NCBI GenBank assembly: GCA_038496445.1 | Contig: JALMLS010000508.1 | Coordinates: forward strand, 1-64,000 | From: Trichosphaerium sp. ATCC 40318 | Lineage: Eukaryota > Protista > Tubulinea | Reading direction: 5' to 3' | Length of the DNA stretch: 64,000 nucleotides | Shown here: positions 4,740-62,660 of the stretch, piece after piece | Position numbering within the stretch: the first letter of the stretch is position 1 | Layout: each line of letters begins with the position of its first letter | Program-made: the position numbers and the translations under genes | The notes under the pieces: generated by a model | Told to the model about the DNA's origin: nothing | Database searches by the model: none | Seen by the model: only the letters and a program-made list of their open reading frames with translations

Positions 4740-5189
4740 CTAGTTGACACCATTACTGTTCCAATACTTGAACCCTCCATGTCGCTTATTACCACTCTTT
4801 GTACTCTCTTTCTTGTCTACCATTGACAGCCCATTACTATGCCAATATTTGCACTCTCCTTGCAGTATATCATTGATATAATTGGACTGCGTCATTAATT
4901 GGCCATTACTATACCAATACTTGTACTCTCCATCCCTTTTGCCGTGTTTCCAATGCACTTGACAAACAAGGTTGCTATATCTGTTCCTTCGTTTCCATTT
5001 TCCATGCTTTTTCAGCTCGCTATCAAACCTTGTTGTCATTGCTGTTTGTTTCGAGAGAAGCGGATACTTATAGTACACTGATACGTCTAAATCAATAATA
5101 TCAAGCTGAAGCTCAACTGGAAGGCACAGTAGAAGGCATTTATCCGATTCTGCACTAAAACTATCTTTGTTGGCTTTTAGCCGCTTCAT
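4740..5189 (-). pseudogene. Truncated F-box-like/MORN2-repeat gene
   Basis: 'LLCLPVELQLDIIDLD' followed by 'G.YKYWYSNGQL' repeats that degrade by frameshift; paralog of the genes at 6745, 11187 and 17017. Confidence 0.7.
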
Positions 5190-6744: not shown

Positions 6745-7702
6745 ATGGCAACAACAAAGGTAAAGATGTACTGTAAGACTCCTCACAAACACAATTTAGA
6801 TTAACAAACAAGAATCGACTCCTTGTCGTTTACTACAACTTCCATTAGAGCTACAACTTGATATTATGGATTTAAGCATGGAAACATACACGTTGTGGCC
6901 TTTATTATCAAAACAAGCAGCTGTGAGCACTCGGTTCAACACTAAATTAAAAAAACACGGAGAGCACAAAAAATGGCATCATGGACGTGTAAGGAAGACG
7001 TGTATGTATGAGAATGGTAAACGAGAAGGTATATTTAAGAGGTACAAGAAGAGACGTTTGATAGAAACCTGTTGGTACAAAGATGGTAAAAAAGAAGGAA
7101 AGCAGATGATCTGGCAGAATGGAAAATTAATTGTGGAAGCATACTACCACAACGGTTTGTATGAAGGAGAATACAAGTCATGGTATGAAAATGGTAAAAT
7201 GAAAAAAAAAATATGTTATATCAAAGGTAAACGTGATGGATGTCATGAGGAGTGGTATGACAATGGGCAATTGAAACTCAAACTGTTTTGTGTCAAAGGC
7301 ATGCTTCATGGAGAGAACAAGTCATGGCATAGAAATGGTACTTTAGAGAGGTTAAGCAACTACTGTAAAGGCAAGCGAGAAGGAGATTATGAAAAGTGGG
7401 ATAGCGCAGGTGTGTTGATTGAGAAATGCCGTTATGTGAAGGGCAAGGTACAAGGAGCTTATTTGAAATGGCACAGTAATGGGCAATTGTATTGCAGATT
7501 CTTTTATAACAAAAATAGAAGAGAGGGAGAGTTTAAGACATTTTTTGACAATGGACAATTAGAAAAGAAATGCACGTATAAGAATGATCTCAAAGAAGGA
7601 GAGGAAGAGTGCTGGACAAGAAATGGCACATTGAAAGAACGCTACTTTTATACAATGGGCATCAGAAGACTAGGTTTTGGCTTAATACCCGAACACCCTT
7701 AA
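6745..7702 (+). CDS. F-box-like + MORN2 (YwqK-like) repeat protein
   Basis: ATG 6745 with a phase-0 intron 6760-6799 joining in frame to 'LLQLPLELQLDIMDL'; then about 9-10 ~24-aa 'G.YKxWY.NGxL' repeats. Confidence 0.85.
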
Positions 7703-11186: not shown

Positions 11187-12032
11187 TCAAGAATTTCGAC
11201 GCCATGGTGGTGTCCATGTTGTTTGTTTACCATCTACAAAAGTGTCACAAAACACGTGAGCACTCCAAGTCAAATATGTCTTCCGTTCTCCATGAAGCAC
11301 ATCATTCACATACTGGGATTGAGTATTTAGTTGCCCATTGTCAAACCATATCTTGAAGTCTCCTTCAAGTTTGCCATTGACATAGTTACATTTCTTTCGG
11401 AGCTGGCCATTTGGAAACCAAGATTTATACTCACCTTCAAACTTGCCATCAACAAAATAGCAATGATCACATACTTGGCTGTTTTTGTGCCATTTCATGT
11501 ACTCTCCTTCGCGTTTATCTTGTTTGAAACAACCGTCCTCACATAATTCTCCATTGCTATGCCATGTTTTATGTCGTCCTTCACGTTTATTGTTGATGTA
11601 CTGTCCTTGTTCTCTTAGTTTACCATATGCATGCCATTTAGTGTAATCTCCTTCGAGGTTACCATTTACATAATTCATTTGTTCCTTTAGTTGTTGATTG
11701 TAATACCATGCCTTATACTCCCCCTCGAGTTTATCATTGACGTAAAAGCCGATGGAGTTCAGTCGACCATTACCATACCAAGTTTTACTTTCTCCTTCAA
11801 GTTTGCCATGGTTCCAGTGCGTTCGTTGTACTACTTGTACTTGCAATGAAGCATCAGCTTTTCGTTTTTCCCATTTCCCATGCTTTTCAAAATCACAATC
11901 AAATCTTGATGTCAAGGCTGCTTTTTTTGATAACAATGGCCACTGTAAGTATAAATTAATGTCTAAATCAATAATATCGAGTTGTAGCTCAATAGGAAGT
12001 CCCAATAACTCATCTGAGTTTGTAATGTTCAT
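11187..12032 (-). CDS. F-box-like + MORN2 repeat protein
   Basis: Intact 281-aa ORF: 'LLGLPIELQLDIIDLD' plus about eight 24-aa repeats 'GKLEGEYKxWYxNGQL'. Confidence 0.9.
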   Translation of the reverse strand: MNITNSDELLGLPIELQLDIIDLDINLYLQWPLLSKKAALTSRFDCDFEKHGKWEKRKADASLQVQVVQRTHWNHGKLEGESKTWYGNGRLNSIGFYVNDKLEGEYKAWYYNQQLKEQMNYVNGNLEGDYTKWHAYGKLREQGQYINNKREGRHKTWHSNGELCEDGCFKQDKREGEYMKWHKNSQVCDHCYFVDGKFEGEYKSWFPNGQLRKKCNYVNGKLEGDFKIWFDNGQLNTQSQYVNDVLHGERKTYLTWSAHVFCDTFVDGKQTTWTPPWRRNS

Positions 12033-17016: not shown

Positions 17017-17688
17017 TCACGCTGTTTGTTTACCATCTGCAAAAGTTTCACAAAACACACGATCACTACCAGTCGAATATGTCTTTCGTTCATGTAAAAC
17101 ATCATTCACATAGTAGGATTGAATTTTTAGTAGCCCATCGTCATACCATATGTAAAAGTCTCCTTCAAGTTTACCGTTGACATAGTTACATTTCTTTTGA
17201 TAATATTCATCTGGAAACCAAGATGTGTACTCACCTTCAAACTTACCATCAACAAAATAGCAATGCTCACGCAAGTTACCGTTTTTGTGCCATTTCATGT
17301 GCTCTCCGTCAAGGTTACCATTTAAATAATTCATTTGTTCCTTTAATTGTCGATTGTAATACCATGCCTTATACTCTCCCTCAAGTTTATCATTGACGTA
17401 AAAGCAGCTGGAGTTCAGTCGACCATTATCATACCAAGTTTTACTTTCTCCTTCACGTTTACCATGGTTCCAGTGTGTTCGTTCTACAACTTGTAGTTTC
17501 GATGAAGCATCAGCTTTTCGTTTTTCCCATTTCCCATGCTTTTCAAAATCACAATCAAATCTTGATGTCAAGGCTGCTTTTTTTGATAACAACGGCCATT
17601 GTAAGTATAAATTAATGTCCAAATCAATAATATCAAGTTGTAGCTCAACAGGAAGTCCCAATAACGGATTTGAGTTTGTAATGTTCAT
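17017..17688 (-). CDS. F-box-like + MORN2 repeat protein (shorter paralog of 11187-12032)
   Basis: 223-aa ORF highly similar to 11187-12032 but two repeats shorter; a probable 5'UTR intron (gtaagt...ctag) abuts the ATG. Confidence 0.88.
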   Translation of the reverse strand: MNITNSNPLLGLPVELQLDIIDLDINLYLQWPLLSKKAALTSRFDCDFEKHGKWEKRKADASSKLQVVERTHWNHGKREGESKTWYDNGRLNSSCFYVNDKLEGEYKAWYYNRQLKEQMNYLNGNLDGEHMKWHKNGNLREHCYFVDGKFEGEYTSWFPDEYYQKKCNYVNGKLEGDFYIWYDDGLLKIQSYYVNDVLHERKTYSTGSDRVFCETFADGKQTA

Positions 17689-22976: not shown

Positions 22977-23786
22977 ATGGAAACGGATAACATAACGCCT
23001 AGAGTGATTGAACAGGCTCAAGTTCTTTGGGACTATCATTGCTTGAACCATGAGCTTAAAAAGAGGGACTGCATTCTTGTACTAGCGACACTTGTTTTTT
23101 TTCATTTTTCGCTAAGAAATTAGGTGCTTGGAAGCAATGACACACGTGTAGCGCATAGAGCGGCTGAACTTTTTCTAAAAGGCTTTGCACCTTATATTTT
23201 ATTCTCAGGAGGTAAAGGCAATCTAACGCTGGCACGTGAGCTTCATTTAATGTAAATAACGGCGAACAGCATTGGGAGCAGTCAGAAGCCGATACTTTCG
23301 CTGCCATTGCGTTAGAGATGGGCGTACCACGTGATAGAATTCTTATAGAAAACAAGTCAAGCAATACAGGCGAAAACATAGCATTCTGCAAACAGGTGTT
23401 GAAAGAACACAACAAAGATCCTCACGTGCGTCTTAAACAACAACAGTGGTTTAGAATTGTGTTTTTTTGTTGAGTTGTTCATTTAGAAGTTCATTGTGGT
23501 TCAAAAACCGTACATGGAGCGTAGAGCATATGCTGCATTGTGTAAACAATGGCCTGAGAATGAGTACATCGTTACATCACCTCAGATTAAGAGCATCAAG
23601 GAGTATATCTCAAAAGATGTAGATATGACTCTCGAGGATTTGATTAATGTTGTGGTTGGAGATATGCAACGTATTATGGTTTACCCTTCTCGTGGATTTC
23701 AAACGACGCAAGATATACCAAAGCATGTCATAGATGCATACAATGGATTGGTTTCGAAGGGCTTTGTTAACCACATGCTAAAATAA
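22977..23786 (+). CDS. DUF218/YdcF family protein
   Basis: 'LWDYH', 'VLGSNDTRVA', 'SGGKG', 'ENKSSNTGENI', 'VQKPYMERRAYA'; 3 introns including a GC-AG intron at 23232-23269. Confidence 0.85.
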
Positions 23787-26074: not shown

Positions 26075-26962
26075 ATGCTTTCTACCACAATAATCAACAG
26101 TACCACCTGTACAAGTTTACTGGAGCTACCGGCAGAGATAATAGCGCTCATCCTGCGCCAAACAACCAATTCGCGTTTTTCAGCTTGTCAAACCTGTCGT
26201 TTACTTGCTTCTATTGTCCATGACATTATTGGATACCATGCTATTATGATTAAAACGTTAGCTCAAGCAAAATCAGCTGTAATACATGCTGGTATTCTGA
26301 AATACACAAAAATCACACTAGGATGGAATGTTGATGACAACATTACCAGGCAATTTGCTGGAGCTCACACTATTGACCTTAGCTACACCAAAGTAACTGA
26401 TGAAGGTGTCAAAGCTCTTGCTGGAGTACATGTGATTAATCTGTTAGCTTGTAAACATATTACAGATGAAAGTGTCAAAGCACTTGCTGGAGTTCACACT
26501 ATTGGCCTTAGTTTCACTTCAGTAACTGATGAAGGTGTTAAAGCACTTACTGGCGTTCATACTATTAAGCTTCGTAAAACTAAAGTAACTGATGAAGGTA
26601 TCAAAGCACTTGCTGGAGCTCATACAGTTAGCCTCTATGATACTTCAGTAACTGATGAAGGTGTTAAAGCGCTTGCTGGAGTGCATACTATTTCCCTTTC
26701 CGGCACTTCAGTAACTGATGAAGGTGTTAAAGCACTTGCTGGAGTCCATACTATTTACCTCACTGACACTTCAGTAACTGATGAAGGTGTTAAAGCGCTT
26801 GCTGGAGTCCATACTATTTACCTTTCTGGCACTTCAGTGACTGATGAAGGTGTTAAAGCACTTGCTGGCGCTCACACTATTAGTCTTAGTAACACTAAAG
26901 TAACAGATGAGGGTGTCAAAGTACTTGCTGGAACTCGTATTATATGGAACTTCAGAATCTGA
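26075..26962 (+). CDS. F-box + leucine-rich repeat protein (intronless)
   Basis: 'LLELPAEIIALIL' F-box-like motif and about nine 22-23-aa repeats 'GVHTIxLxxTSVTDEGVKALA'. Confidence 0.92.
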   Translation: MLSTTIINSTTCTSLLELPAEIIALILRQTTNSRFSACQTCRLLASIVHDIIGYHAIMIKTLAQAKSAVIHAGILKYTKITLGWNVDDNITRQFAGAHTIDLSYTKVTDEGVKALAGVHVINLLACKHITDESVKALAGVHTIGLSFTSVTDEGVKALTGVHTIKLRKTKVTDEGIKALAGAHTVSLYDTSVTDEGVKALAGVHTISLSGTSVTDEGVKALAGVHTIYLTDTSVTDEGVKALAGVHTIYLSGTSVTDEGVKALAGAHTISLSNTKVTDEGVKVLAGTRIIWNFRI

Positions 26963-37510: not shown

Positions 37511-38341
37511 ATGGCCGCAATACTCCTGAAAGATAACACTGATCCTATCCAACAGTTACCACCAGAAACTTTAACTAATATTCTATGTTTTTTAAACCGA
37601 AGGCAGCGTATTTCAGCAACAACAGTATCTCAATTATTTAATAACATAATTCGAACAAACATTGGGTTCAATAGCATCATATTAGAGGCATCATCGGATT
37701 GTCGTGTTCTAAAGGCATCTCCGTTGCTTAAAAACACACGAATACTATCAAGAAATGTTGGAGTAATATCAGTGAGCGACTTGGGTTGCCTTTGTGGTGT
37801 TCGCACTGTAATTCTTGAATCTTCAAAAATCACTGATGAAGGTATCACAACACTGCTAAACGGAGGAAACCATGCGATACATTACATCGACTTGTCATAT
37901 ACAGCTATCACTGATAAGTCGGTAAAGGCTCTTCAAGGTGTACACACCATTAGGATCGATTGCCAAGCTGTTACTATTGAAGGTATTAAGGCATTAAGAG
38001 ATTCACATGATGTTTCTCTTGGTTGTGCTAAAGATAGTTGGCTTAAATATCTTGGCAATGTTGAAAGGATTAAAATTACCAATGCTAGAGACTTAACAGA
38101 TGATGGAATACAATCAATAGTAAATGTCAAGCGCTTAAAACTATCATATGCCTTTAAGTTGACAGACTCAGGTTTGAAACACTTGGTCAATGTTACACAT
38201 TTATCTCTTTTTAATTGTTTCCAGATAACTGATGGTTGTTTCAAACACTGGAAGTCTCTTGAAAGTATTTATTCTCTCGGAAACCCTCTTATCACGACAA
38301 AGTTGAATCATACAGTAAAAAGGCTAGTGTATTTTATTTAG
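37511..38341 (+). CDS. F-box + LRR protein (intronless)
   Basis: 'IQQLPPETLTNILCFLN...TVSQLFN' F-box; 'IDLSYTAITDKSVKAL' LRRs. Confidence 0.9.
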   Translation: MAAILLKDNTDPIQQLPPETLTNILCFLNRRQRISATTVSQLFNNIIRTNIGFNSIILEASSDCRVLKASPLLKNTRILSRNVGVISVSDLGCLCGVRTVILESSKITDEGITTLLNGGNHAIHYIDLSYTAITDKSVKALQGVHTIRIDCQAVTIEGIKALRDSHDVSLGCAKDSWLKYLGNVERIKITNARDLTDDGIQSIVNVKRLKLSYAFKLTDSGLKHLVNVTHLSLFNCFQITDGCFKHWKSLESIYSLGNPLITTKLNHTVKRLVYFI

Positions 38342-38907: not shown

Positions 38908-40140
38908 TCAAAAAAATGTATTTTCACAAATTCTTGAACTGTTGAGGTGGACAGAGGCATCTTGTAGTGACTTTATAGCTTTATCCGTTAAAGATGTACC
39001 ATGGTAGTAAAGGGTGTGAACACTTTTCAAAACTTCAAGGCTTTCATCTGTCACACGCTCACAATAGCTTATGCTAATGGAATGAGCACCTGCCAGTGAT
39101 TTAATGCTTTCATCTGTTATTTTGCACGTTGAAAGATTAATTTTGTGCACACCTTTTAGTGCTTTGACACCTTCATCTGTTACTTCAGTGCCTAGTAAAC
39201 CAATGGTGTGAACACCTGCCAGTGATTTAACACCATCATCTGTTACATGCATACAATCTGTAAGACTGATTTTATGGACACCTTTTAGTGCTTTAAGACC
39301 TTCATCAGTTACAACAGTGGAATCTAATTGAATGGTATGAACGCCTGCCAACTCTTTGATACCATCGTCTGTTATATAATAACAATACCCAAGGTTAATA
39401 GAATGAACACCCCTGAGTGCTTTGATACCCACATCTGTAACTACAGTACCACTAAGGTTAATAGCATGAACACCAGCAAGATATTTCACGCCTCTATCAG
39501 TCACTGATCTGCACAAAGAAAGATCCATGGACCAAACATCTCCTAGTTCTTTCAGATCACAATCGTTAATATTATTTGAGCTGGCTTTGATATTATGGCA
39601 GCCTCTAAGAAATGAATGTGATGTCATATCTTTATTGCAACAGTTGATGATAATACTATTGATCATGATACCTCTGTACTGCCTAATCTTTAAGACATCA
39701 TAAGCGGTTTTAAGATACACCCTTTCGTATCCAACAATGTGGTGTATGATATCAGCCATCAAGTGACATGACTGAGCAACAGAGAATCTACTTTTCGCAT
39801 CTGTGTACTGTAGAATATTCGAAATAACCTCTGGTGGAAAAAATACAATATTGTTTTCACTGTGTATTGTCACGTTTATTCTTTTGTCGTTATTATGCGC
39901 AATATCCTTAGAACGTGTTAAAAAGGTATTGGTTACATCAGTGGTAACAGGAAGAGGTTGCTTAGAAATAAGCTGATCGAGATGATTTACAAAGGTAGTC
40001 TTGGTGGTATATACAATGCTTTCAAGCTGATTTATGAACGCAGTTTTGTACTCTTCTACCATTAATGCGTCTAACGCCTTTGTATGGGTTTGACGATAAT
40101 AAGCGAATGCTTGCTCTAATAAAACACCAGAGAAGTCCAT
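38908..40140 (-). CDS. F-box + LRR protein with an N-terminal helical extension
   Basis: ATG 40140 (MDFSG...), 'FFPPEVISNILQY' and about 9 LRRs. Confidence 0.9.
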   Translation of the reverse strand: MDFSGVLLEQAFAYYRQTHTKALDALMVEEYKTAFINQLESIVYTTKTTFVNHLDQLISKQPLPVTTDVTNTFLTRSKDIAHNNDKRINVTIHSENNIVFFPPEVISNILQYTDAKSRFSVAQSCHLMADIIHHIVGYERVYLKTAYDVLKIRQYRGIMINSIIINCCNKDMTSHSFLRGCHNIKASSNNINDCDLKELGDVWSMDLSLCRSVTDRGVKYLAGVHAINLSGTVVTDVGIKALRGVHSINLGYCYYITDDGIKELAGVHTIQLDSTVVTDEGLKALKGVHKISLTDCMHVTDDGVKSLAGVHTIGLLGTEVTDEGVKALKGVHKINLSTCKITDESIKSLAGAHSISISYCERVTDESLEVLKSVHTLYYHGTSLTDKAIKSLQDASVHLNSSRICENTFF

Positions 40141-42003
40141 GATTTGATGATCTTGAGCTATAGATTGTTTGTTTACCAAGTACGACTTTTTTTGCTTGTT
40201 TTGTGCCAAAACTTATTGGATGATGTACAAACACTCACACTCACACCCCACACCTACTCGTCCTATCAAAACACATGGCGCTTTCTATCTCTTTGTATAG
40301 GTTTTCATGTAAGCAATCACACAAGGTGGTATGAAGTTTATTAGAATTAGAAGCACCAAATTGCTGAAGCTTTCAAGCCAAGCTTGATTTCAAATTTACG
40401 GGGGTAAGAGCAACAACATCACCAATTTCCATCTCTCAAGGTATTCTATCTAACAGTCTACGATCAGTAAACTTGATGAAACTTAAATTAATTTATTGTG
40501 GCACACTAATCTCAGGCTTTGTAAGAACAATAGAAGTTACATAGCTGAACGTAAGTGTACTTTAGTTCAGTAACCTAAGTTGGCTATGCTTATTGAACTT
40601 AATAATGGTCATCACTATCACCTTGGAACAGTTCTCCGACTATTTTTAAGAACATTGTGGAAAGTACAACTTAAGTAGTGAAATTTTAGAGTTTTGAGCC
40701 ATGATAGAGGCAGACGTTGAATATCAATTTGTTTATTTCATGTAGGTTACATTTACAAAAAATTATCTTTACATTGATGGCAAGTCTCTTTGTACGTTAT
40801 CACTGTAAGAAAGAACTTTAGCCCTACGGGTACTAAACAAAGCTTGTTCATGGTCAGACCATATTGTAGGAGTACTCCATGTTGATTTCTTTACCATCAG
40901 CGAATGCAGCTTCGCCAATTTTCTTTGACAGATATGGCTTAGATGTTTAACATAAAGCTGTCTCAGCCTGATGATGGCGACCACAGTATCTATTGTCAAT
41001 ACTATAAAGACATTAGTTGATAGGTATTCCATGTAGATATAACATACAGCACAAAACCACAATATTATTTTCTATTATGTACTCTTTCCATTGAGCTGAT
41101 ACAAGGTAAGGAGTAATTGCGGTAATGAGGAACAAGGAGATGAAGATATGTTGTTGCATCTGTTTGAGTTTGAAAATAATGATTGTTTTCACGTTGATAG
41201 ATATTTGATTGATTTTTGGATCACTCAAAGTATGAATTCGTTTTAACAATGATTCGTGTGTGAAAGAAACGCACATTTTTATTGAGGTTACAATTATAAG
41301 CATACAGAAACAGGATTCAGTATTACACACAAGACAAGAGTATATCACTCAAGGAAAACAGTTCAAAGAATCCATTTGTCAAATCAATCAACAATGATTG
41401 AAATTCGCCAAAATAGTTCTTTTTCGCTCTACGTCACTGACATATATGACAAGCTCAATTTCACTCAAGATCTTGTTACAATGCTTCTACACATTAGTAC
41501 TCTGGGTGTACGATAAATGAAATGCTTGTTTGAGTACTACACTATCAATTTATTTCAATCTTACGTTTATTGTAGGCTCAACATGCAAAGACGTTGTTTG
41601 CTACAATAATTTCACCAAGTACCTATGCATCTAATACCCCTTCAACACATATCGCTACCACAGATCAAGATTCTTTTCAATAAATACAACGTGTAAGTAC
41701 TGATCAAGAGGTTAGAAAGGTTACTTTGGTTTAGTCCAATTTATTACTTCAACACGTGATTGCAACAAGCTCTTACAATGACAGACGAAAAAGCTCGTCA
41801 CTCTTTACATTAATACAACAACATGTTTGTTGACAATCTCGTGCAGTAAACGGCACGTTTGGGCTGTATGCATCCCACATTTAAGAATATGAACTATTAT
41901 TTTTGTAGAGAAGACAGATGTTGTTCCAAGGTTTAAAATGAGCATTTATGAATTAAAAGCAAAGGCAGGTTAACTGAATTAATCACGTGCACAACTATTG
42001 TTT

Positions 42004-42855
42004 TTATCCAGAGGCATACAAGGTGACACCTCTTGAACGTATGTCTTCTATTTGCTTCTCTGTAAATATATCATCACAAGCACATATGGTTTCGCATCCA
42101 CCTTCAACAAGTGCCATTATCCCTTCGTATGTTACATGTATACAAGCATAAACATCAACGTATTTAATAGCTCCTCCTTTTGCCAACGTCTTAAGACCTT
42201 CGTCAGTAACATTGCAACACTGCATCTCAACAGTATGGGCAGTTGCTAAAGCCTTAAGACCTTCGTCAGTGATACCACAACTATACAAGTTTATACTATG
42301 AACACCAGAAAGTGCTCGAAGTGTATCATCGTTAGCCATAGTATAAACAAGACTAATAGTATGAACTCCAGCTAGAGCATTGAACGCCTCACTGTTTGCT
42401 CTACAATGATGAAGATGAACTTCATGAACACCTTTAAGTGACTTTACAGCTTCATCTGTAAGATCACAATGAGCAAGAGTTATTTTGTGTACAGGTAGGA
42501 TAGCTTTGATGTCTTCTGGTGTAAGTTTCATTCCCGAAAGATCAATTTCGTGAACACCAGATAGTGCCTTAAAGTGCTCACGTTTTATTTTGCTGTGCGT
42601 CAAATTTATTGGCGTGTTCCTCAATACGCCTTTGTATTTCGATACCGTTTCAACGTCTTTGGCCCTTATACGGATAGGAGGGTACCCTACTATGTCGTGT
42701 ATGATATCAGACAGTTTTCTACACGTTTGAGCGATGATAAAGCGCATTGTGTCTGTTTTTTCTAAAATTGAAGCTAGAATTTCCGTTGGTAGGTTCAAGA
42801 GCATCTGGCTATCGTTTCCGAGCGTTGTATCGCCCTTTTCTGCACTTTCATCCAT
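42004..42855 (-). CDS. F-box + LRR protein (intronless)
   Basis: Likely start MDESAEKG; 'LLNLPTEILASILE...AQTCRKL'; LRRs 'GVHxIxL...TDEGLKAL'. Confidence 0.9.
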   Translation of the reverse strand: MDESAEKGDTTLGNDSQMLLNLPTEILASILEKTDTMRFIIAQTCRKLSDIIHDIVGYPPIRIRAKDVETVSKYKGVLRNTPINLTHSKIKREHFKALSGVHEIDLSGMKLTPEDIKAILPVHKITLAHCDLTDEAVKSLKGVHEVHLHHCRANSEAFNALAGVHTISLVYTMANDDTLRALSGVHSINLYSCGITDEGLKALATAHTVEMQCCNVTDEGLKTLAKGGAIKYVDVYACIHVTYEGIMALVEGGCETICACDDIFTEKQIEDIRSRGVTLYASG

Positions 42856-43823
42856 ATTACTAACAATAGCTTTAGTTTGGAGCTCTAATACTACAAACGG
42901 AGTCGTACTGATTACTAGATGCCATTTTTGTATTTTACGTTCTGTTTGTGAACATTTGTTTAAGTAAGGGTAACAGTCTTTTTTTGGCACAATCAAAACG
43001 TTGGTACAGTTGATGTTATTCTGCCACCACCAAGCAGGTTTGTACAACACTATCATTAGTTGTACGCTAGCGGCAGTGGTGGAAAGCCAATAATACTTAA
43101 GGCATACTTGTCATTAATTGACGTCCACGTGTTTTGACCAAAACTGACACTGTACTTGTCGATCAGAAGGAATTTTACAGCGAAAAGTCGACAGTTTCCA
43201 GTGTTTATCGCAGTTGGTGACGCGAGAGGTTCAGCAAACAAGAATACTGTATTTACAACAATACAATGGTGAAGGATTAATTCAAAGACTCAAAAAGTAG
43301 TGATTGGTGCTTTACCGGCTCTTTCAGAGTTTTTGATATTTATGCACTGTTTTTTCTTATTAAAAGTTGTATTTAGAGATAGAGCACCTTATGTAACTAA
43401 CTTCAGAGTTAGAACTAACTAGACATCATCTTATGCAAAGAGCTCAAAGTGTGTTCGCAAAAACGTTTATTTTCTTTTTTTTGAAATTATTTCGAATGAA
43501 TTTTGTTTTTCTCTGTTTTGGAACTCAACGTCTGTTTTTCCGCTTCCTTCCACGTGTCTCATCCTTGTACTTTTGTTTTAACTTGTCCTAAGAATTGTAG
43601 TGAGTTTAAAAATTACAATATATAAGCAAGGTTCGCTATCAATGATAAAACTTAAAACAAAGACTAAACGAAGAAAAAAAAAAATAATGTTCACTAATTT
43701 TGTGTGAACAAAATCCTATCAACTACAGAATATTTGTGTCAAATAAACACGTGTTTATGTAAAGAAACAAAACAGAATTCTTGCATTGAAAAAAAAAGGA
43801 TGGTAGCGAGCTGCGCAAGTTGT

Positions 43824-43895
43824 TTTTTTAACCCGGAATCGAACCGGGAGAAATTCATTGACAGTGAAGTATGTTAACCGTTACATTATTAAAAG
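43824..43895 (-). tRNA. tRNA-Asp(GTC)-like gene with an atypical acceptor stem (possibly a pseudogene)
   Basis: 72-nt cloverleaf: D stem ATGT/ACAT, anticodon loop CT-GTC-AA, T arm CCCGG-TTCGATT-CCGGG, acceptor CTTTTAA/TTAAAAA; a T run about 25-35 nt downstream could be a Pol III terminator. Confidence 0.7.
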
Positions 43896-49499: not shown

Positions 49500-50744
49500 A
49501 TGAGGTTACTAGCTATTGCGCTAATAGCCCTTCTTGGCGTTGTGTACACACAAACATTCTCTATAATGACGTCGCAATCACTGCGAGCATGCGCAGGATG
49601 TCGTAAGTCCATGTACGATGGCAAATTCAAGTATTGCACTGGTTACTTTCCTTCTGCGACTATGAAAGGCTGTAGATGGACAGGAGGTAATGGAGAATGC
49701 GTATTTCCGCCTCAAAAGGTTGTAACACAGCCTGAATGTCAAGAACTTTGCAGAAAAGACCAAAGATGTCGTTTCTACAAATCATACGCAAATGCTATTT
49801 GCAACCTTCATTACATGGAAGAGTGCAACCTAGTTGAAGGTTTTGGTATTGGAGATACATACAGAAAGAATGTTGCACCTCCACCTGTACAAAGGTTTTC
49901 GGTCGTTAAAATGGACGGTACACTCCTTACTCTGTCAGCTGGAAGATTTCTATGGGGAACAAATAAGGGAAATAACATCTACGTTCGAACAGATAGCTCA
50001 TGGAGAAGTGTCGGTGCTGGTATGAAACTGGTTTCTTCCTCACCTACTGGGCTTGTTCTTGCTCTTACGACAACTGGTTTTGTCGCGCAACGTACTGGTA
50101 TTACTGTACGTCCAGAATTCAGTTCTTGCTTTTTTTTTTTTTTTGGGTTGACATTTTTTTTTACTTCTTTTAGGCTTTTGCACCTCAAGGCACAAAGTGG
50201 CTGTTTCAAGGTATGACTAATGTAGTTCATCTATCTGCTTGTGCTTTCAATACAGTATGGGCAACGCAGTCAACAGGCGTTGTGATGTATCGTAACTCTA
50301 TCCAAAAATGGGTCAAGGTACTATGTGTTTCGCGAAATTGTGACTCTTCTCTTCTCTACCAACTACTGAATGTAGTAATCTAATACACTTTAGGTACCAG
50401 GAACTACAATGTTCGAGGTATCTTGTACCCCAGAAGGACATGTATACGCCATAAACCGGGGTAGAAGGCTCATGATGCGTCAAGGAACAACAATTACAAA
50501 TCGCATGGGAACTGGTTGGGTTCTAGATCCAAATGCTAGTTTCAGTGCTTTGTCACATGCTGTTTGTGTGCATGGTGTTTACTACGTTGACACAGCTGGA
50601 CGTCTATGGAGGAAGGCTCCAGGTAAAGATGTTTACCAGTTTATTTCTGGTGTAAGCCTTTTGAGAAAAGTAACTTGTGGATACCCATTTCAACTTTATG
50701 TTGTTAATAGTTCAGGTTCTATCTTCAAGCTCAACTTTGTGTAA
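49500..50744 (+). CDS. Secreted lectin-like protein: Cys-rich PAN/apple-like region + tectonin-type beta-propeller repeats
   Basis: Signal peptide; 'CQELCRKDQRCRFY...CNLH'; repeats 'LWGTNKGNNIYVR', 'QRTGITAFAPQGTKW', 'VYAINRG...RQGTTITNRMGTGW'; two introns. Confidence 0.75.
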
Positions 50745-54316: not shown

Positions 54317-54728
54317 CAAGAGAAGAGGTGTGAAGCTTGTAGTTGTATGAAACGTATGTAATTATCTCCAGCACGTGAATTTTCAAAACGTGTACTACAC
54401 GGAGGTTCCAGAAAACTACAAATAATACGTAGTCACGTGTTTCGTGCAATTGTTTGAAGTCTTGAGGAAATAGGTAGCAAAATATGGTAAAAACCAAAAA
54501 AAGTCATTGAAAGCAACTCCTCGAGTTTATTTCACGTTCCACTGTTATTGTTTAGATAATATTATGGCTCAAGGTTTTACATGGTCCGAATTGCATGATT
54601 TTTTTTCAGGATGCAATCAAAGTGACTTAAAGCAAATCGCTTTAAATTGTAGTACAATTATGTGGGTGTTATTCTGAGCGTCTCTCGTCGCTGTTACTGA
54701 TGTATTGGGGTAACGCTTTTGATTCTGA

Positions 54729-57700
54729 ATGTCATCGCGTGCCAGTGTGTTAGCGCGGTCAGCCAAGTATCGCAAGAAGTATATCTCAGCGTCTAAACGC
54801 ACAGCCAGAAAGATAGGACATGTTGACTCAGCAAAACTGGTTAACTTGCCGGCAGAGTATTGGAAAAGCAAAGACAATCAATTACACTTCATTATTGACG
54901 TAAGCAAGCCTCAAATTCGTTAAATTGGCCAAAAACGCACAATACCGCGTAAAAACGCCCTAAAATGCGCAAAAACGCAAAAAAACCCATCAAACGTTGT
55001 ATACAACCACTTATTAAATTTACACAATACAGATTGAAGCGATTCTATCAGTTGAGACTGTAAAAGACTGGTACAACGTCCGTTGGCAAGATGTAATAAA
55101 GATTGGTGGAAAGAAGTTCCTTCAGTAAGTGTCAGCAATGTTTTTTTGATACGCTCAAAATTTTCTACAACAAAAAAGTTTATTAAGTTCACACCTTTGT
55201 ACCATTATACTATTCTTGAAATAACTATTGACACAACGTATAGGGAGTTTAACTATTGTTTGACAACAGTACTTGAACGATTCTACCCAGAGGAAGAGTG
55301 GTTTCCTTTTTTTTTTAGTACGCTTTAACCTCTTTTGAAGTTTTTTGTTTGAATGTCAACGAAATCGCTCTCAGTCTAATTTTATTATAGAACATGCTGA
55401 GCCTGGATACTGGGATTCTAAAGAGAATCATAAGATGTTTATATCCTATGTACGTTTGCATGAAAACGAAGTAATTCGGTGACAAACACGTGCAAAAAAA
55501 AAAAAGTGTTGCATCAACAAGTCGTTCAATAGTATTTTCTTCCCTGATGTACTGTCACCCATACTCTGCTCTGATTTTCTTAAATCGATGACTAACATGC
55601 TTAGATAACCAAAGAACTTGATATTGAGAAGCTAGATGATTGGCATAACGTAACAAATGAAGATATTGTAAATCATGGTGGATATTCGTTTATGCAGTAC
55701 TTACCTTTGTTTTTTGCTTGCTACACGCAAATTCTTTAATGTTGGTTCTAGAAACTATAATTTTACAATGTATAATATGCTTCGTGATCAATTTCCGAAA
55801 CACTCATGGCAGCCATGGAGAATGGGTGAGCCTTTTTTACCAATCCATTTTTTTTTTCAACTTTTTTTACTATTCATAAAGGACGTGTTCCACGAAACTT
55901 CTGGGCATCAGTTTCTAAGCAGAAAACATGGATTAAGTCAGTGAGTAATTGGGAATATATATAAACGCATGATTGACATAGTCTGACCATGTACAGGTTG
56001 AGGAAAAACTAGGTATCAAAAAGTTAGAAGATTGGTACTCTGTTCACCTTAAAGATATCTCAAATTGTGACGATTTTGCAGGCCAATTCTTTGCAACTGC
56101 GTATGTCTAAACCCTCACCTAGCTTTGTTACTTTATTTTTTGTATATTTGATCTATTTGTGAATTGTCACGTGATATTTTAAACGAGCACTACAACATTT
56201 TTTGTTTTTTCTAAACGTTGTTTGTAGATATTGTGGTTCTGTTTATAAAATGGTGCAATACGTGTACCCAGATACGAAATGGTTCCCTTGGCGTTTCAGT
56301 ACGATTTTATAATAGCCCATAGAACCTTTTTTTATCAACCTTGTGTATAGACCATACACCTCAAAAGCATTGGAAAGATAAACAAAACAGAGACGAGTTT
56401 GTTTCGTTTTTGGAAAAAAAATTAGACATAGTAGACATGGACGATTGGTATCGTGTCACTGCAAACATGATAATCGAGCAAGGTGGAAGTGGGTTTATTC
56501 ATCATTACGATAACTCAGTGTACAACTTTGTGTCGTTCCAGTTTCCAATGCACAAATGGGTTCCTTGGAAATTTCGTACGTCGAATACTTGGATTAAAAT
56601 TGTCGCAAGTTTTCTGTTGTTGACATCTTGCCATCAACCTATGGTGGTACTAAAATGCAGTTTAAACCACCTGTAATTGTAATTTTGTATTATTACATTG
56701 AGCTCCATTGACATTTGTCGCTGGTAGCTGATGTCAAAGATGAAAACAAGAACCTTCTCAATTTTTTGTTTCTGCCCGCTGTTCTGTTTTTTTATCTTTT
56801 ACATTGCCTAAATTTGTTAGATTGTGTTCCTAGAGGACATTGGAATAAGTTATCAAACGTAAGGAGACTAATTAGACACGTGAGTTTTTGTTATTCCCAT
56901 TTTATTCTTAAAAAAACTAACTAGCGTTTATATAGCTTGAAGACTCGCTTAATATCGAAGAAATAACGGATTGGTATGCGATAACAAATGATGATATCAT
57001 CCGTGTTGGTGGTGCAAATATTTTAAGGTACTGACTAACCCAACAACAAACCCTTTCACTCATTTTCAAAAAAAAAAAGAAGGTTTGAACGGTATTGTCA
57101 CTTTTATCTTTTCATTACATATTTTGGTAATTAGAACGCGTAAGGTTATACCTTAGTTATTTTTTAATCACTAGAACAAAACAATTTAAATGCAGATTTA
57201 TTTTTAGCGCTGTACTGTTGGATTAAATTAATCGCTAAAAATAGTTACTATAATTTTTCTCTGAAAGAAATCTTATATGATGTCTATCCAACGTTTGATT
57301 GGGATATTCACAAGTTCAGTAAGTAATAATATTACTGGAAATATATTCATTCAATTCTCTAATCCTACCTGCACAGCAAACCTCCCACTTAGATTTTGGA
57401 AGCAACCAAAGAATATCCGTAAATTTTTGGAAAGTGTCGCTCCAAAGCTGTTGATAAAGACACCCAAGGATTGGCTTAATGTATCAGTAAAACAGCTTGT
57501 ATTAGTAGGTGGTAAAGGTCTATCATTTTACTGGCCTAAGGCTGTATTTTTGGCTTATACCGAGCTTGGAAAATCAGAAGACACCGAAAAAGTCGAAATT
57601 AAGGCACAACAAGGGTACATTCGATATTTCTCTTCTCTTTATTTTCTTGATCTTTCACTTGTCTAATTTGATGCCTAGGATACTTTTTCGGTCGATTAGA

Positions 57701-58388
57701 GCCATATTCCCTGGTATGGCTGTTTTTGAAGAGTACAAGCCTGATTTACAGAGAAATCTATCTATTGCTTTGGATATTTTTGTTCCTGATTTGAACTTGG
57801 GTTTTGAGTATCAGGGCGAACACCATTTCTATGATGTCTCCGCGTTTGGATATACACATGTTCAAGAGGCTAGAGACACTGAAAAATCTCGTATTTGTGA
57901 AGAGAACGGTATGTTAGGAATCCAAAGAAACCTAAATCTCGTTTTTATTGTTGCGGCACCTCATTCCTTTGTTTGCTTGCCCTATTCTTAATGTCTACTT
58001 CAGGTATAACAATTGTCCCTATTCCCTATTGGTGGGATACTCATGACTTAGATAGTCTGAAAGCAACAATCATGTATTATAGGTACAAACGCCAATTCCA
58101 AGACTTTTATGTGTTGGATTTTTTTTGTAAACAGTAACACGTGTTGTACTTACCGCTCTTGTCTTACATAGATCAGATATTGTATTTAAAATTCCTGAAG
58201 ACGTTGACCCATTATGCCCTCTTCCTGACCAAATTGGCAATGATTCAACAACAGCTTCACAGAGAGAAGGTACGAGCATGTTTTTGAAGCAGATACAAAA
58301 TAGTTTTGTAACAAATTAACTAACCTGTCTTTTAGCCAAGCACCTAATGCATGCTACAACTAAAAAATACAAAATGTGTACCGCATAA
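54729..58388 (+). CDS. Tandem ~75-aa Trp-rich repeat protein (x6) with a C-terminal PD-(D/E)XK / RAP-like nuclease domain, about 18 exons
   Basis: Manual GT-AG splicing gives one open frame with repeats 'P..(F/H/Y)W...N...F...L...L.I....DWY.V....I...GG..F...Y..S.Y......(Y/F)P...W.PW.F', then 'LDIFVPDLNLGFEYQGEHHF...RDTEKSRICEENGITIVPIPYWWD'. Confidence 0.85.
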
Positions 58389-58527
58389 AATAATAAAAAG
58401 GTGGACTCTTCAGGACGAAACTGTTTGTGCTTGTATTGCACGTGAATACTAAAAAATTGACATAACTTCTGAGTTCGCTTAATCGCTACAACTTAACGAT
58501 CATAATCTCATTCAGAACTTGCAAATT

Positions 58528-60184
58528 ATGAACTTCTCCGGTATTTCAATTGATCAAGCATTCAATCATTACCGTAGTAACCATCCGGAAGAATTCAAAC
58601 AGGTTATGGCGGAGCAAAGCGAACTATTTACAAAACAACTTGAAACAATGCTAAATATGACAAATAAGAGCATTATAAAACAACTAGATGATATCCTGTT
58701 GAAACAAACGCATACATTTTCAAAACAAGCGAACAAACGCCACCTGCAAAATCAAAAACAGCTGCTACAAAAGTAAGTGTCTTTTTTTTTTTCCCCGACT
58801 AAACTTCTATTTTTTGTGCCTATATTTTGGGCTAACAATAACCGGTAGTACACAATTGACATCGAAAAACATAGAACTAAGCATAATGGACTTTCCACCA
58901 GAGGTTATCACGAATATTCTACATCATACAGAAGTAAAAGCAAGGTATTCTGCCGCCCAATCATGTCATTTGATGGCTGATATCATTCACCACATTGTTG
59001 GATACGGAAAAGTGTGTCTCTCGACAATCTCAGATATTTTAAAGATTAGAGAGTACAAGGGTATCATGAACAACTCTTTAATTTCCTTCTATATGTACCT
59101 AGCTGGAAAGAACACTTTATATTCATTACTAAATGGTTGCAAACACATTACTGCACATCAGAGTAGTATATCAGATTATGATCTTGAAGACCTTAGAGGA
59201 GTTCATACGATTGATCTTAGTGAATGTAATTCAGTAACAGATGAAGGTGTGAAGGCACTGAAAGGTGTCCATACAATCAACCTTAGTAACACAGATATTT
59301 ATTACGGTATAAAGGAATTGCAAGGAGTATATGATATTAACCTTGCCAACACTCAAGTTACAGATGACGATATAAAGGCATTGGTAGGTGTACATAGAAT
59401 TAACCTTAATGATTGTGAGTATATTTCAGATGAAGGGATTAAGGAGTTGAAGGGTGTTCATACTATTGAGCTAAAAGGAACGGAAGTTACAAATGAAGGC
59501 ATAAAGGCATTGAAAGGCGTTCATACCATCAACCTAGATGAAACTAAAGTTTCAGATGAAGGCGTCAAGGCTCTCAAAGGTGTTCATTCAATTAATCTTC
59601 ATTATTGTGTGTATGTTACAGATGAAGCCATCAAGGAGTTGAAGGGCGTTCATACTATTGACCTTCAAGGAACATCAGTTACGGATGAAGGCATAAAGGC
59701 TTTGGTAGGCGTACACACAATTGGCCTTGCCTCTCTTAATGTTACAGATGAAGCTATCAAATCACTCAAAGGTGTTCACACAATTAATCTTGCCGGTTGT
59801 AAGTATGTAACACATGAAGGCGTCAAGTCACTTAAAGATATTTATGACATTACACTTGATTCCACTTCAGTAACAGATGAATGGCTCAAATCACTTGTAG
59901 GCGTTCACAGAATTAGCCTTAATAATTGTGAGCATATTACAGATGAAGGGATCAAGAAGTTGAAGGGTGTTCATACTATTGAGCTTGAAAGAACATCAGT
60001 TACAGATGAAGGTATTAAAGAGTTGAAGGGTGTTTATTCGATTAATCTTGCTCATACATCAGTAACAGATGAGGGTATCAAGGAGTTACTTGCTGATTTT
60101 ATTGATCTTACAGGTTCTGCAAATGTGACTCACGAAGGTTTAGCTGCACTCAACAATGCCTCAGTAACAGTAAAACTATACTAG
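58528..60184 (+). CDS. F-box + LRR protein with an N-terminal helical extension (1 intron, 58773-58848)
   Basis: The intron joins ORFs 58519 and 58814 in frame; 'DFPPEVITNILH' and about 15 LRRs. Confidence 0.9.
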
Positions 60185-61979: not shown

Positions 61980-62660
61980 CTAATAGATTATACCTAAGTC
62001 AAGCACACCAAACTCAGATCGTCTGTCGTTTTCCATGTAGATGGTATGTACACCTAGAAGTGCCTTTAACCCTACTTCTGTTATTGATTTACAATGCATC
62101 AAGGAGATAGTATGTACACCTGCCAAAGCCACAATGCCTTCATCTGTTACACTTGTAAATGACAAAGAAATCTCATGTACACCTGCCAACGCCACAATGC
62201 CATTGTCTGTTATTGATTTACAAGCATACAAGTCGATAGAGTGTACACCTGCCAATGCCTTCAAACCTTCATCTGTTACATTGGTAAAAGATATATCAAT
62301 CTTATGCACACCTGCCAATGCCCTGATGCCATTATCTGTTATTGTTTTACAATTAGATATGTAGATAGTATGTACACCTGCCAACAATCTGATTGCTTTA
62401 TCTGTTAGTATTGATCCTTGAACGTTGATTATTGTATTTTGGAGTAATGGACTACCAGAGAGCATCTGAATCTCTGTTACATTTTTTATTCTGATATGAC
62501 CATATCCAACGTGGTTGTGAACAATATCCCGCAATAAATGACTTGTTTGGGCTGCACGGAGTGTATGTGGCCCTTGTTTGAGAATATGGACTATTATTTC
62601 AATTGGTAGCCCAACAAGGTCGAATACTTGGTCTGTGTGTTGTTGTATTTTCTTTTTCAT
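61980..62660 (-). CDS. F-box + LRR protein (intronless)
   Basis: 'LVGLPIEIIVHILK...AAQTSHLL'; about 5-6 LRRs 'AGVHxIxxS...TDxGIxAL'. Confidence 0.9.
   Translation of the reverse strand: MKKKIQQHTDQVFDLVGLPIEIIVHILKQGPHTLRAAQTSHLLRDIVHNHVGYGHIRIKNVTEIQMLSGSPLLQNTIINVQGSILTDKAIRLLAGVHTIYISNCKTITDNGIRALAGVHKIDISFTNVTDEGLKALAGVHSIDLYACKSITDNGIVALAGVHEISLSFTSVTDEGIVALAGVHTISLMHCKSITEVGLKALLGVHTIYMENDRRSEFGVLDLGIIY

Follow-up and report, generated by a model that had tools for sequence, protein, structure and literature searches.

A 75-residue repeat array joined to a predicted Vsr-type nuclease in Trichosphaerium: a candidate domesticated endonuclease of mitochondrial DNA

The question raised by this locus is what kind of protein is encoded between positions 54,729 and 58,388 of the window, that is, of the whole 64,000-nt stretch of Trichosphaerium DNA analysed here. 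The initial annotation had proposed a cryptic 18-exon gene, in which six tandem repeats of about 75 residues are fused to a PD-(D/E)XK or RAP-like nuclease and serve as a coded reader of nucleic acid. Our analysis confirms the gene, and tentatively, with a probability of about 0.42, we read its product as a domesticated repeat-guided nicking endonuclease predicted to act on mitochondrial DNA. Manual splicing from the ATG at 54729 to the TAA at 58388 (forward strand) joins 18 exons across 17 GT-AG introns of 52-245 nt into a stop-free ORF of 647 aa, and the peptides formerly quoted for repeats 3 and 4 and for the nuclease are all present in it. The features are as follows.

54372..54439, no strand: pair of CACGTG hexamers, some 300-360 nt before the ATG, which may be promoter elements
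54729-54899, 55033-55124, 55244-55317, 55391-55449, 55605-55696, 55752-55825, forward strand: exons 1-6 (splice model and homologue alignment)
55882-55940, 55997-56100, 56228-56298, 56351-56575, 56821-56879, 56936-57027, forward strand: exons 7-12 (same basis)
57245-57318, 57377-57614, 57679-57908, 58004-58082, 58172-58269, 58336-58388, forward strand: exons 13-18 (same basis)
54729..54839, forward strand: N-terminal extension of 37 aa, rich in Arg, Lys, Ser and Ala, presequence-like
54840..55316, forward strand: repeat 1 (aa 38-112), introns at offsets 60 and 152
55317..55824, forward strand: repeat 2 (aa 113-187), from repeat comparison, profile and intron phase
55825..56297, forward strand: repeat 3 (aa 188-265, with a 3-aa insert), from repeat comparison, profile and intron phase
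56298..56574, forward strand: repeat 4 (aa 266-340), nearly all in exon 10, with an AF2 model
56575..57317, forward strand: repeat 5 (aa 341-415), from repeat comparison, profile and intron phase
57318..57543, forward strand: repeat 6, truncated (aa 416-471), from repeat comparison and profile
57589..58184, forward strand: Vsr/DUF559/DUF2726-type PD-(D/E)XK domain (aa 487-602, exons 14-17), from PHROG, DUF2726, AF2/Foldseek of a homologue and alignment
57767, forward strand: codon of the atypical A525, where the family has Glu or Gln
57773..57886, forward strand: predicted active-site codons D527 (57773), E538 (57806), Q540 (57812), H544 (57824), D561 (57875) and K564 (57884)

Introns recur in repeats 1, 2, 3 and 5 at nucleotide offsets 60 (phase 0), 152 (phase 2) and 226 (phase 1), the middle one of repeat 3, which carries the insert, being at 164 instead of 152, and repeat 4 is a single 225-nt exon. 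Chance splicing would not yield such a periodic pattern. In addition, the spliced product matches transcript-derived homologues over about 600 aa with 30-33% identity (E ~1e-94). The objection that manual splicing produced a spurious gene, or that the gene is a pseudogene, might rest on the missing Pfam matches of single exons and on evidence for the locus from DNA alone; against the periodic phases, canonical splice sites, 647 codons free of stops and an alignment with transcript-derived proteins along the full length, this reading is hardly credible. The gene and its splice model are therefore real, with the 18 exons and short introns as annotated, and exons 17-18, the C-terminal tail, are the part with least support. 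The gene is not cryptic, but an ordinary intron-rich one. The hexamer CACGTG is 6-fold enriched across the whole window.

The array comprises five full 75-aa repeats and a truncated sixth, in which 55 of the 75 profile columns are matched; the annotated period stands, and the count of six repeats becomes five and a partial one. The query repeats share 18-39% pairwise identity and are not uniformly basic, their net charges being -4, -4, +6, -1, -3 and +9 from first to last. An AF2 model of repeat 4 (pLDDT 94) consists of six short helices and, together with the 75-aa length, bears out the view that the unit is not PPR, OPR or TALE. Foldseek with one repeat against the PDB gave no match, a word-based homologue search with one repeat gave no candidate, neither the repeat, the nuclease nor either of two alignments gave a significant match in PDB sequence searches, and single exons matched nothing in Pfam and NCBIfam, DUF4046, NUMOD and RAP included. 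We found no Pfam family, solved structure or publication for the 75-aa repeat, and nothing relevant in the literature on it or on DUF4046. The suggested resemblance to DUF4046 (PF13255) is nevertheless real, though distant: hhalign gives a probability of 92% (E 5e-7) with a period of 75 aa for both, and tblastn with a bacterial member reaches E 2e-13, while the Pfam model itself matches 3 of 54 members below its cut-off (best E 0.056) and none of the query exons.

A repeat code set by variable residues near PxxxW and GG, as had been suggested, finds no support in 1,246 repeats: the most variable columns by entropy are scattered along the whole unit, and the strongest covariation links positions that seem to pack together or to make polar contacts inside a repeat, which does not resemble a two-residue code. 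No specificity pair of the PPR/TALE style stands out in either measure, and there is as yet no evidence for a programmable one-repeat-one-base code. Comparison repeat by repeat with the nearest homologues shows no clear diagonal of orthology.

The C-terminal domain matches PHROG profiles of Vsr/DUF559-branch nucleases. DUF2726 is matched by 23 of 50 family members and the RAP Pfam model by one of 50, at E 0.03; homologue P0027 scores 13 bits against RAP (PF08373; cut-off 24.2 bits), and the query exon has no match. An AF2 model of P0027 (pLDDT 90) has the elements H475-487, E494-499, E511-517, E522-527, H541-557 and E561-566, namely helix, three strands, helix and strand, the order of the PD-(D/E)XK core, and Foldseek of this model against viral structures retrieves Vsr, homing and restriction-type nucleases (E 2e-4 to 1e-2, probability 1.0). 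From the proposed Vsr/DUF559/RAP signature, the first two names hence survive and RAP falls below its Pfam cut-off. Profiles and the modelled homologue support placing the domain in the Vsr/DUF559/DUF2726 branch of PD-(D/E)XK, with predicted nuclease activity. Across 84 homologues of about 35% identity, D527, E538, G541, H544, D561 and K564 are conserved at 98-100%, which implies selection for chemistry. The candidate catalytic D, E and H (D527, E538, H544) are intact as annotated, but the query has Ala at 525, a position occupied in the family by Glu (81%) or Gln (15%). Residues E25/D51/H64/H69/D97 of Vsr correspond to E170/D196/N208/H213/D222 of I-Bth0305I (PMC3239194); the D, polar residue, H and D are kept in the query as D527, Q540, H544 and D561, and the position of E25/E170 is Gln494, with Gln in 90% of the family.

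On the whole, this is a very large family, judged by profile searches, for which databases hold no model. Among the 8,559 protein clusters that the repeat profile matches, 101 of the best 150 carry the same nuclease; members have 5 to 25 repeats. Transcript homologues come from Cavostelium (at least eight distinct transcripts), Physarum and the heterolobosean BB2, four paralogues lie elsewhere within 22 kb, and further members occur in bacteria and one phage. The earlier reader had missed the family size, the bacterial and phage members, the DNA-ligase fusions and the presequence-like N-termini. The repeat is also fused to a second Vsr-type nuclease subtype, and a repeat with two partners would behave like an exchangeable DNA-binding module; proteins made of the repeat alone are found in Planctomycetes and in the form of DUF4046. 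Searches of GenBank phages with the repeat matched no record, and homologue P0164 found nothing in viral contigs. The phage copy is the immediate upstream neighbour of DnaB. A Chloroflexi copy (GC 0.37, against 0.53-0.56) looks like recent lateral cargo. Its association with a UvrD/PD-(D/E)XK operon was rejected because none of 80 related loci has the gene and their slot holds, by inspection, unrelated cargo (lipoproteins, IS200-like, toxin-antitoxin-like, SIR2-like). A quick nuclease tree, with 125 columns, unrooted, with most forks open and four 'Cavostelium' labels assumed, gives no direction of transfer. The C-terminus of some paralogues presumably resembles a PARP-type zinc finger, a candidate dropped with no Pfam support.

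An ATP-dependent ligase domain, complete or partial, is present in seven homologues and matches minimal DNA ligases of solved structure (6gdr, 4d05 and 8u6x; E 4e-25); it is of DNA-ligase type with an OB domain, and neither the query nor the rest of the window has one. Two domain orders are seen, repeats-nuclease-ligase in Cavostelium and nuclease-ligase-repeats in Physarum, and motif I is altered in three of the six full fusions. Lig E is reported in Amoebozoa, with a DNA repair role in other eukaryotes, in the accessible part of PMC10665377, and that part makes no mention of a ligase fused to a repeat-nuclease.

The query N-terminus has its first acidic residue not before position 33, and from its composition the extension is presequence-like, though, being Lys-rich, it may instead be an NLS. 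The share of proteins lacking D and E in residues 2-21 is 46% among 103 putative protist members and 17% among 35 control genes nearby (Fisher p 0.003), and no such N-terminus occurs among 19 prokaryote/virus-like members; the composition test is crude, and its gene calls are partly redundant and partly truncated. An R-3-like motif occurs in 12% of N-termini against 1.8% of internal windows, and several members have clear cleavage-site motifs of the R-x-F/Y-S-S type. About half of the protist members fail the composition test.

According to our favoured reading, the gene would be a nucleus-encoded, domesticated descendant of a prokaryotic or phage-type modular endonuclease. The basic extension would direct import into mitochondria, where the array may bind double-stranded DNA over an extended length and position the C-terminal domain, and this domain, like Vsr and I-Bth0305I, would nick one strand, D527/D561 binding Mg2+ and H544 serving as general base. 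Such a nick could serve mitochondrial genome maintenance, such as recombination, replication initiation, repair or selective degradation; paralogues with different repeat content might cover different sites, and the ligase-fused ones might cut and reseal in one chain. The correspondence of the active site to Vsr/I-Bth0305I and the nearest folds and profiles, from homing and restriction-type nucleases of phages and giant viruses, suggest this reading, and the ligase fusions, the phage copy next to DnaB, the laterally acquired Chloroflexi copy, the second nuclease partner of the repeat and the excess of N-termini lacking D and E in protist members speak for it too. DNA is the more likely substrate than RNA, the clues being the ligase fusions, the phage copy beside DnaB and the phage and giant-virus homing-type nearest nucleases. 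Against the favoured reading stand the query's lack of a ligase, repeats not consistently basic, Ala525, the family Gln at Vsr E25, a Lys-rich N-terminus that may be an NLS, the action on RNA of organelle proteins that join helical repeats to Vsr-like RAP domains, FASTKD4 among them being catalytically inactive (PMC11879112), the crudeness of the presequence test and the altered motif I in half of the six full fusions.

Among other explanations, the main rival is a factor that processes or stabilises mitochondrial RNA and has converged on FASTK/OPR-RAP/HPR proteins, its repeats binding a transcript and its Vsr-like domain cleaving or only binding it; this is unlikely yet deserves serious weight. 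It would account for the presequence-like N-termini and for the lineage-specific expansion in Cavostelium and in the 22-kb cluster, and the top PDB Foldseek matches come from chains of the Toxoplasma mitoribosome and from the RAP module of FASTKD4, RAP being itself Vsr-like (PMC11879112); these matches are not significant, however (E >=0.02, TM 0.14), DUF2726 far outnumbers RAP among members, and both the OB-bearing fused DNA ligases and the settings of the family in prokaryotes and phage favour DNA. We consider rather improbable a DNA nuclease of the nucleus or cytosol that takes part in repair or in conflict, say with the DNA of giant viruses or endosymbionts, in a family whose expansion and variable repeat number would reflect diversifying targets. 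The NLS-like Lys/Arg clusters of the query, the members failing the presequence test, the range of 5-25 repeats and the repair role of Lig E (PMC10665377, accessible part) agree with it, whereas no PADLOC model matches, no defence-island context was found around the bacterial copies and the cleavage-site motifs of several members are clear.

A catalytically weak or dead scaffold, binding nucleic acid or protein through its repeats with a nuclease fold that only binds, draws on A525, the family-wide Q494, the catalytically inactive FASTKD4 (PMC11879112) and the repeat-only proteins, and is clearly improbable in view of six active-site positions conserved at 98-100% in 84 homologues. Very improbable is a homing endonuclease or mobile element that has stayed selfish: despite the EDxHD-like layout of N-terminal repeats and C-terminal Vsr domain and the apparent lateral cargo in a bacterium, the 17 spliceosomal introns lie at repeat-symmetric positions, no mobile-element ends, terminal repeats or host intron surround the gene, its GC equals that of the window, and no second copy exists in the 64,000 nt. 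We also regard as improbable, slightly above the dead scaffold, the bolder idea that each 75-aa unit reads a base or short subsite and that hundreds of protist paralogues, some with a ligase of their own, perform sequence-programmed cutting and sealing on mitochondrial genomes or transcripts. Physarum and BB2 belong to lineages with unexplained mitochondrial insertional editing. A co-transcriptional mechanism is favoured for this editing (PMC5421314), which argues against a link with the family.

Few helical-repeat families, namely PPR, OPR/HPR, mTERF and FASTK-RAP, now account for how protists express organelle genes and maintain organelle genomes. To these would be added a family of thousands of clusters, with no Pfam model or structural match for its repeat, a conserved nuclease active site and in some members a ligase. 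If they act on mitochondrial DNA, these proteins are candidates for unidentified amoebozoan mitochondrial activities, such as the nuclease selectively digesting mtDNA in Physarum zygotes (PMC8864008, accessible part), and would represent a second, RAP-independent route of domesticating a repeat-bearing Vsr-type nuclease. If modular, the repeats would offer a new programmable scaffold. DUF4046 gains its first functional lead from the kinship.

Among known systems, PPR, TALE and PPR-SMR proteins also have helical repeats in tandem, some of them with a nuclease attached, but the query unit has 75 aa and about six helices instead of 34-38 aa and two, and repeats within a protein of the family are about 31-36% identical with no code positions detected. 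Organelle FASTK/OPR-RAP and apicomplexan RAP proteins, which act on RNA (PMC11879112), similarly join helical repeats to a C-terminal Vsr-like domain, with presequence-like N-termini and lineage-specific expansion in protists; however, their repeats are unrelated in length and sequence (38-40 aa in OPR/HPR), FAST1/FAST2 matched none of the members searched, the query-family nuclease scores to DUF2726 and phage families and not to RAP, and full-length prokaryotic and phage members and DNA-ligase fusions belong to the query family. DUF4046 of Bacillus plasmids has the P-x-x-F-W start and S..YP..W.F end in register, with a different middle (no D-W-Y, no GG) and no nuclease in three proteins examined. 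DNA ligase E resembles the ligase of the paralogues, a domain absent from the query. Free-standing DUF559/DUF2726-type endonucleases of phages and giant viruses share E-Y-Q/D-G-x-Q-H ... R-D-x-x-K and 30-44% domain identity, but mostly have other N-terminal modules, and none of three GenBank phage proteins examined has the 75-aa repeat. Unlike homing endonucleases, the query gene is nuclear with spliceosomal introns, not intron-encoded. Vsr and the EDxHD enzyme I-Bth0305I differ in the first Glu, replaced by Gln in the query, whose Q-G-x-x-H is also one residue shorter than H-G-x-x-x-H of Vsr, and EDxHD enzymes have NUMODs (no Pfam match in query exons or members searched) instead of 75-aa helical units; with them the query shares putative repeated binding modules N-terminal to a Vsr-type nuclease, the D, polar residue, H and D positions, and a D-to-H spacing of 17 residues (PMC3239194).

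The repeat-nuclease gene lies at 54729-58388 on the forward strand, and its spliced structure, predicted in the initial annotation, is borne out by the window sequence: 18 exons joined through 17 GT-AG introns of 52-245 nt each give a 647-aa ORF without internal stop, with a branch-site-like motif 11-24 nt 5' of the acceptor in most introns. A phase-1 intron is located at each repeat boundary, and intron offsets 60, 152 and 226 recur with identical phases in repeats 1, 2, 3 and 5 (164 and 235 in repeat 3, where three residues are inserted), while repeat 4 is one 225-nt exon. Such periodicity is what duplicating an exon triplet in tandem would give, and not a product of chance. Six repeats had been claimed; five are complete and the sixth is truncated (pairwise identity 18-39%). 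Splicing was done by script, while searches and folds used exons and homologues. The model aligns with transcript-derived proteins over ~600 residues (30-33% identity, E ~1e-94), and a homologue-only nuclease profile scores it at E 8e-31; exons 17-18, the C-terminal tail, are placed by splice signals alone. An artefact is extremely improbable. The gene is unbroken, and is no toxin, effector or virus gene.

The single exons have no match in Pfam or NCBIfam. The window-repeat profile detects 8,559 clusters at E <=0.001 and 4,719 at 1e-10 among 1.84 billion representatives, and the same nuclease follows 5-25 repeats in 101 of the best 150 of the 8,559; many nuclease-less members among these 150 are probably truncated gene calls. 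Named transcript sources are Cavostelium apophysatum (at least eight distinct), heterolobosean BB2, an MMETSP sample and Physarum, and further members are found on metagenome contigs with eukaryotic neighbours, one 22-kb stretch holding four paralogues. A Chloroflexi member has 8 repeats and the nuclease, a phage-contig member 4 repeats and the nuclease, and Planctomycete members repeats only; on a marine contig, possibly from a giant virus, the 75-aa repeat is joined to a second Vsr subtype. The Planctomycete proteins (loci L009:5884-7176, L011:6082-7134 and L012:5971-6780) carry a C-terminal second helical unit, W-A-D-x-Y/H...G-x-W-P, without Pfam match. In the open-access literature searched, neither the 75-aa repeat nor its nuclease fusion is described.

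AlphaFold2 folds repeat 4 into six short helices (pLDDT 94) and the homologue P0027 into six such helical units plus an alpha/beta domain (pLDDT 90, pTM 0.63), and Foldseek finds no PDB match for a single repeat. Bacillus plasmid DUF4046 proteins share the 75-aa period with matching ends (hhalign probability 92%, E 5e-7), and the DUF4046 Pfam model itself is not reached by family members; judged by profile comparison, the likeness to DUF4046 noted in the initial annotation holds as a remote kinship. Such proteins are located on Bacillus cereus-group plasmids (L098-L100), with IS elements and integrases close by; some of the proteins contain identical repeats in a row, and 104 plasmid records match. 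The initial annotation also proposed a programmable code with sites near PxxxW and GGxxF. Among 1,332 repeats, conservation lies in columns with a structural role (W, D-W, GG, Y-P and W-x-x-x-x-F), while the most variable columns (38, 58, 42, 51, 39) are scattered across the unit and not confined to the proposed sites; the pairs that covary most strongly are either hydrophobic or resemble an intra-repeat polar contact (14/63: Q-S, R-D). No code is detected in column variability or covariation, and we consider one quite unlikely. The family is basic (median pI 9.1, +1.5 per repeat) and the query mixed (pI 7.9).

The C-terminal domain belongs to the Vsr/DUF559/DUF2726 nuclease branch. Exon 15 matches 30 phage records and, at E 3e-9 to 9e-7, PHROG families, some named as homing or HNH endonucleases and others unnamed. 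Among 50 family nuclease domains, Pfam assigns DUF2726 to 23, PvuRts1I to 5, and DUF559 and RAP to one each. The viral matches from Foldseek comprise phage and giant-virus endonucleases of the Vsr, DUF559, homing and restriction types, and PDB matches are weak (E >=0.02; Toxoplasma mitoribosome chains, FASTKD4, PvuRts1I). Residues D527, E538, G541, H544, D561 and K564 are conserved at 98-100% in 84 homologues, and D527/Q540/H544/D561 map, by motif and spacing and not superposition, to D51/H64/H69/D97 of Vsr and D196/N208/H213/D222 of I-Bth0305I (PMC3239194). The position of Vsr E25 is however Gln in the family, and the residue corresponding to query Ala525 is Glu or Gln in 96% of homologues. 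For a domain with the conserved set D527, E538, G541, H544, D561 and K564, an inactive scaffold is distinctly improbable.

Putative protist members have N-terminal extensions, absent from prokaryote-like members. Residues 2-21 lack Asp/Glu in 46% of 103 putative protist proteins; the figure is 7% for internal windows, 17% for 35 neighbouring genes (p 0.003, redundancy uncorrected) and 0 of 19 for prokaryote/virus-like members, a label partly assigned by judgement. The protist N-termini have doubled Arg and a six-fold enriched R-3-like motif. The query extension fits a presequence. Its Lys/Arg clusters could also be an NLS, and a nuclear or cytosolic conflict/repair nuclease is an unlikely reading. 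In a quick, unrooted and poorly resolved nuclease tree, the partner of the query is the MMETSP protein (SH-aLRT 90), and one cluster (SH-aLRT 97) takes in most of the domains from prokaryotes and phages. Since the gene has 17 introns and window-typical GC (34-41% throughout), and no terminal repeats were found around it, this copy is a resident gene; the same features make a selfish element very improbable.

The window has short GT-AG introns, genes for tectonin-like and cathepsin proteins, and expansions of F-box genes that lack introns; we take it for nuclear DNA of a protist, probably an amoeboid one, and it is not human. Features along it include:
4740-5189, 6866-7702, 11187-12032, 17017-17688: intronless MORN-variant repeat genes, F-box-like N-terminus by eye
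26075-26962, 37511-38341, 38908-40209, 42004-43056, 58814-60184, 61980-62660: apparently intronless F-box + LRR genes
43824-43895: tRNA-Asp
47277: cathepsin with I29 propeptide
49500-50744: secreted-looking protein with tectonin-like domain pieces
The F-box + LRR genes form an expansion within an intron-rich genome, and their architecture is reminiscent of giant-virus and amoebozoan F-box expansions. MORN_2 is confirmed in two MORN-variant genes; the F-box-like + MORN layout is common in giant viruses, and these genes are possibly an old viral acquisition or a retroposed family. Just downstream of the repeat-nuclease gene, an 85-aa exon (58519-58776), probably the first exon of the gene at 58814, looks similar by eye to the N-terminal portion of the 433-aa F-box-LRR ORF at 38908-40209. 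CACGTG occurs 63 times at 63-63407 (9.8 expected; maximum of 100 shuffles 17), also upstream of the repeat-nuclease gene and of the next gene, and is a possible genome-wide E-box/G-box-like promoter element; its 90-95 nt spacing at 23143-23428 suggests a short tandem repeat array.

Four observations favour DNA as the substrate. An ATP-dependent ligase domain, full or partial, is present in seven homologues and matches solved minimal DNA ligases (E 4e-25), being of the Lig E type (PMC10665377); the domains are not arranged in the same order in Cavostelium as in Physarum, and 3 of 6 full ligase copies have a canonical motif I. The nearest nucleases are DNA-type phage enzymes, the phage copy lies directly upstream of DnaB, and the Chloroflexi copy is low-GC lateral cargo found in 0 of 80 related loci, as a mobile endonuclease would be expected to be. 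For this reason the UvrD genes next to it are uninformative, and a functional link to them was rejected. In Chloroflexi-like loci (L004:7920-15241, L015-L094), two UvrD-like genes flank a cargo slot of variable length (44 to 4,877 nt), a candidate insertion hotspot; the genes it holds are unrelated, and on inspection some of them look toxin-antitoxin-, SIR2- or IS200-like. A weak HMG-box match (E 0.004) at residues 10-34 of homologue P0166, before ten repeats, may be another faint pointer to DNA. In the Physarum transcript 01262 (P0207) the order is reversed, with nuclease, ligase (motif I intact) and seven repeats, which offers a tractable test case in a laboratory organism. In four Cavostelium paralogues (P0014, P0074, P0125, P0211) the nuclease or ligase is followed by a common C-terminal CxxC...CxxxxC module, without Pfam match and probably a zinc finger.

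We tentatively prefer, with a probability of about 0.42, a joint reading in which the protein would be imported into mitochondria, the repeat array would bind DNA over an extended site, and nicking of one strand by the Vsr-type domain would serve mtDNA in recombination, replication, repair or selective degradation. The gene, the fold and the residues are established from the data, and we infer where the protein acts, on what substrate and with what activity. An RNA target is possible because organelle repeat proteins with a Vsr-like RAP domain act on RNA, FASTKD4 doing so without cleaving (PMC11879112), and mitochondrial RNA processing, the main rival reading, is somewhat unlikely. Among known systems, the EDxHD homing endonucleases resemble the query in layout and chemistry, and the FASTK/OPR-RAP proteins in apparent cellular setting, yet the query is a member of neither.
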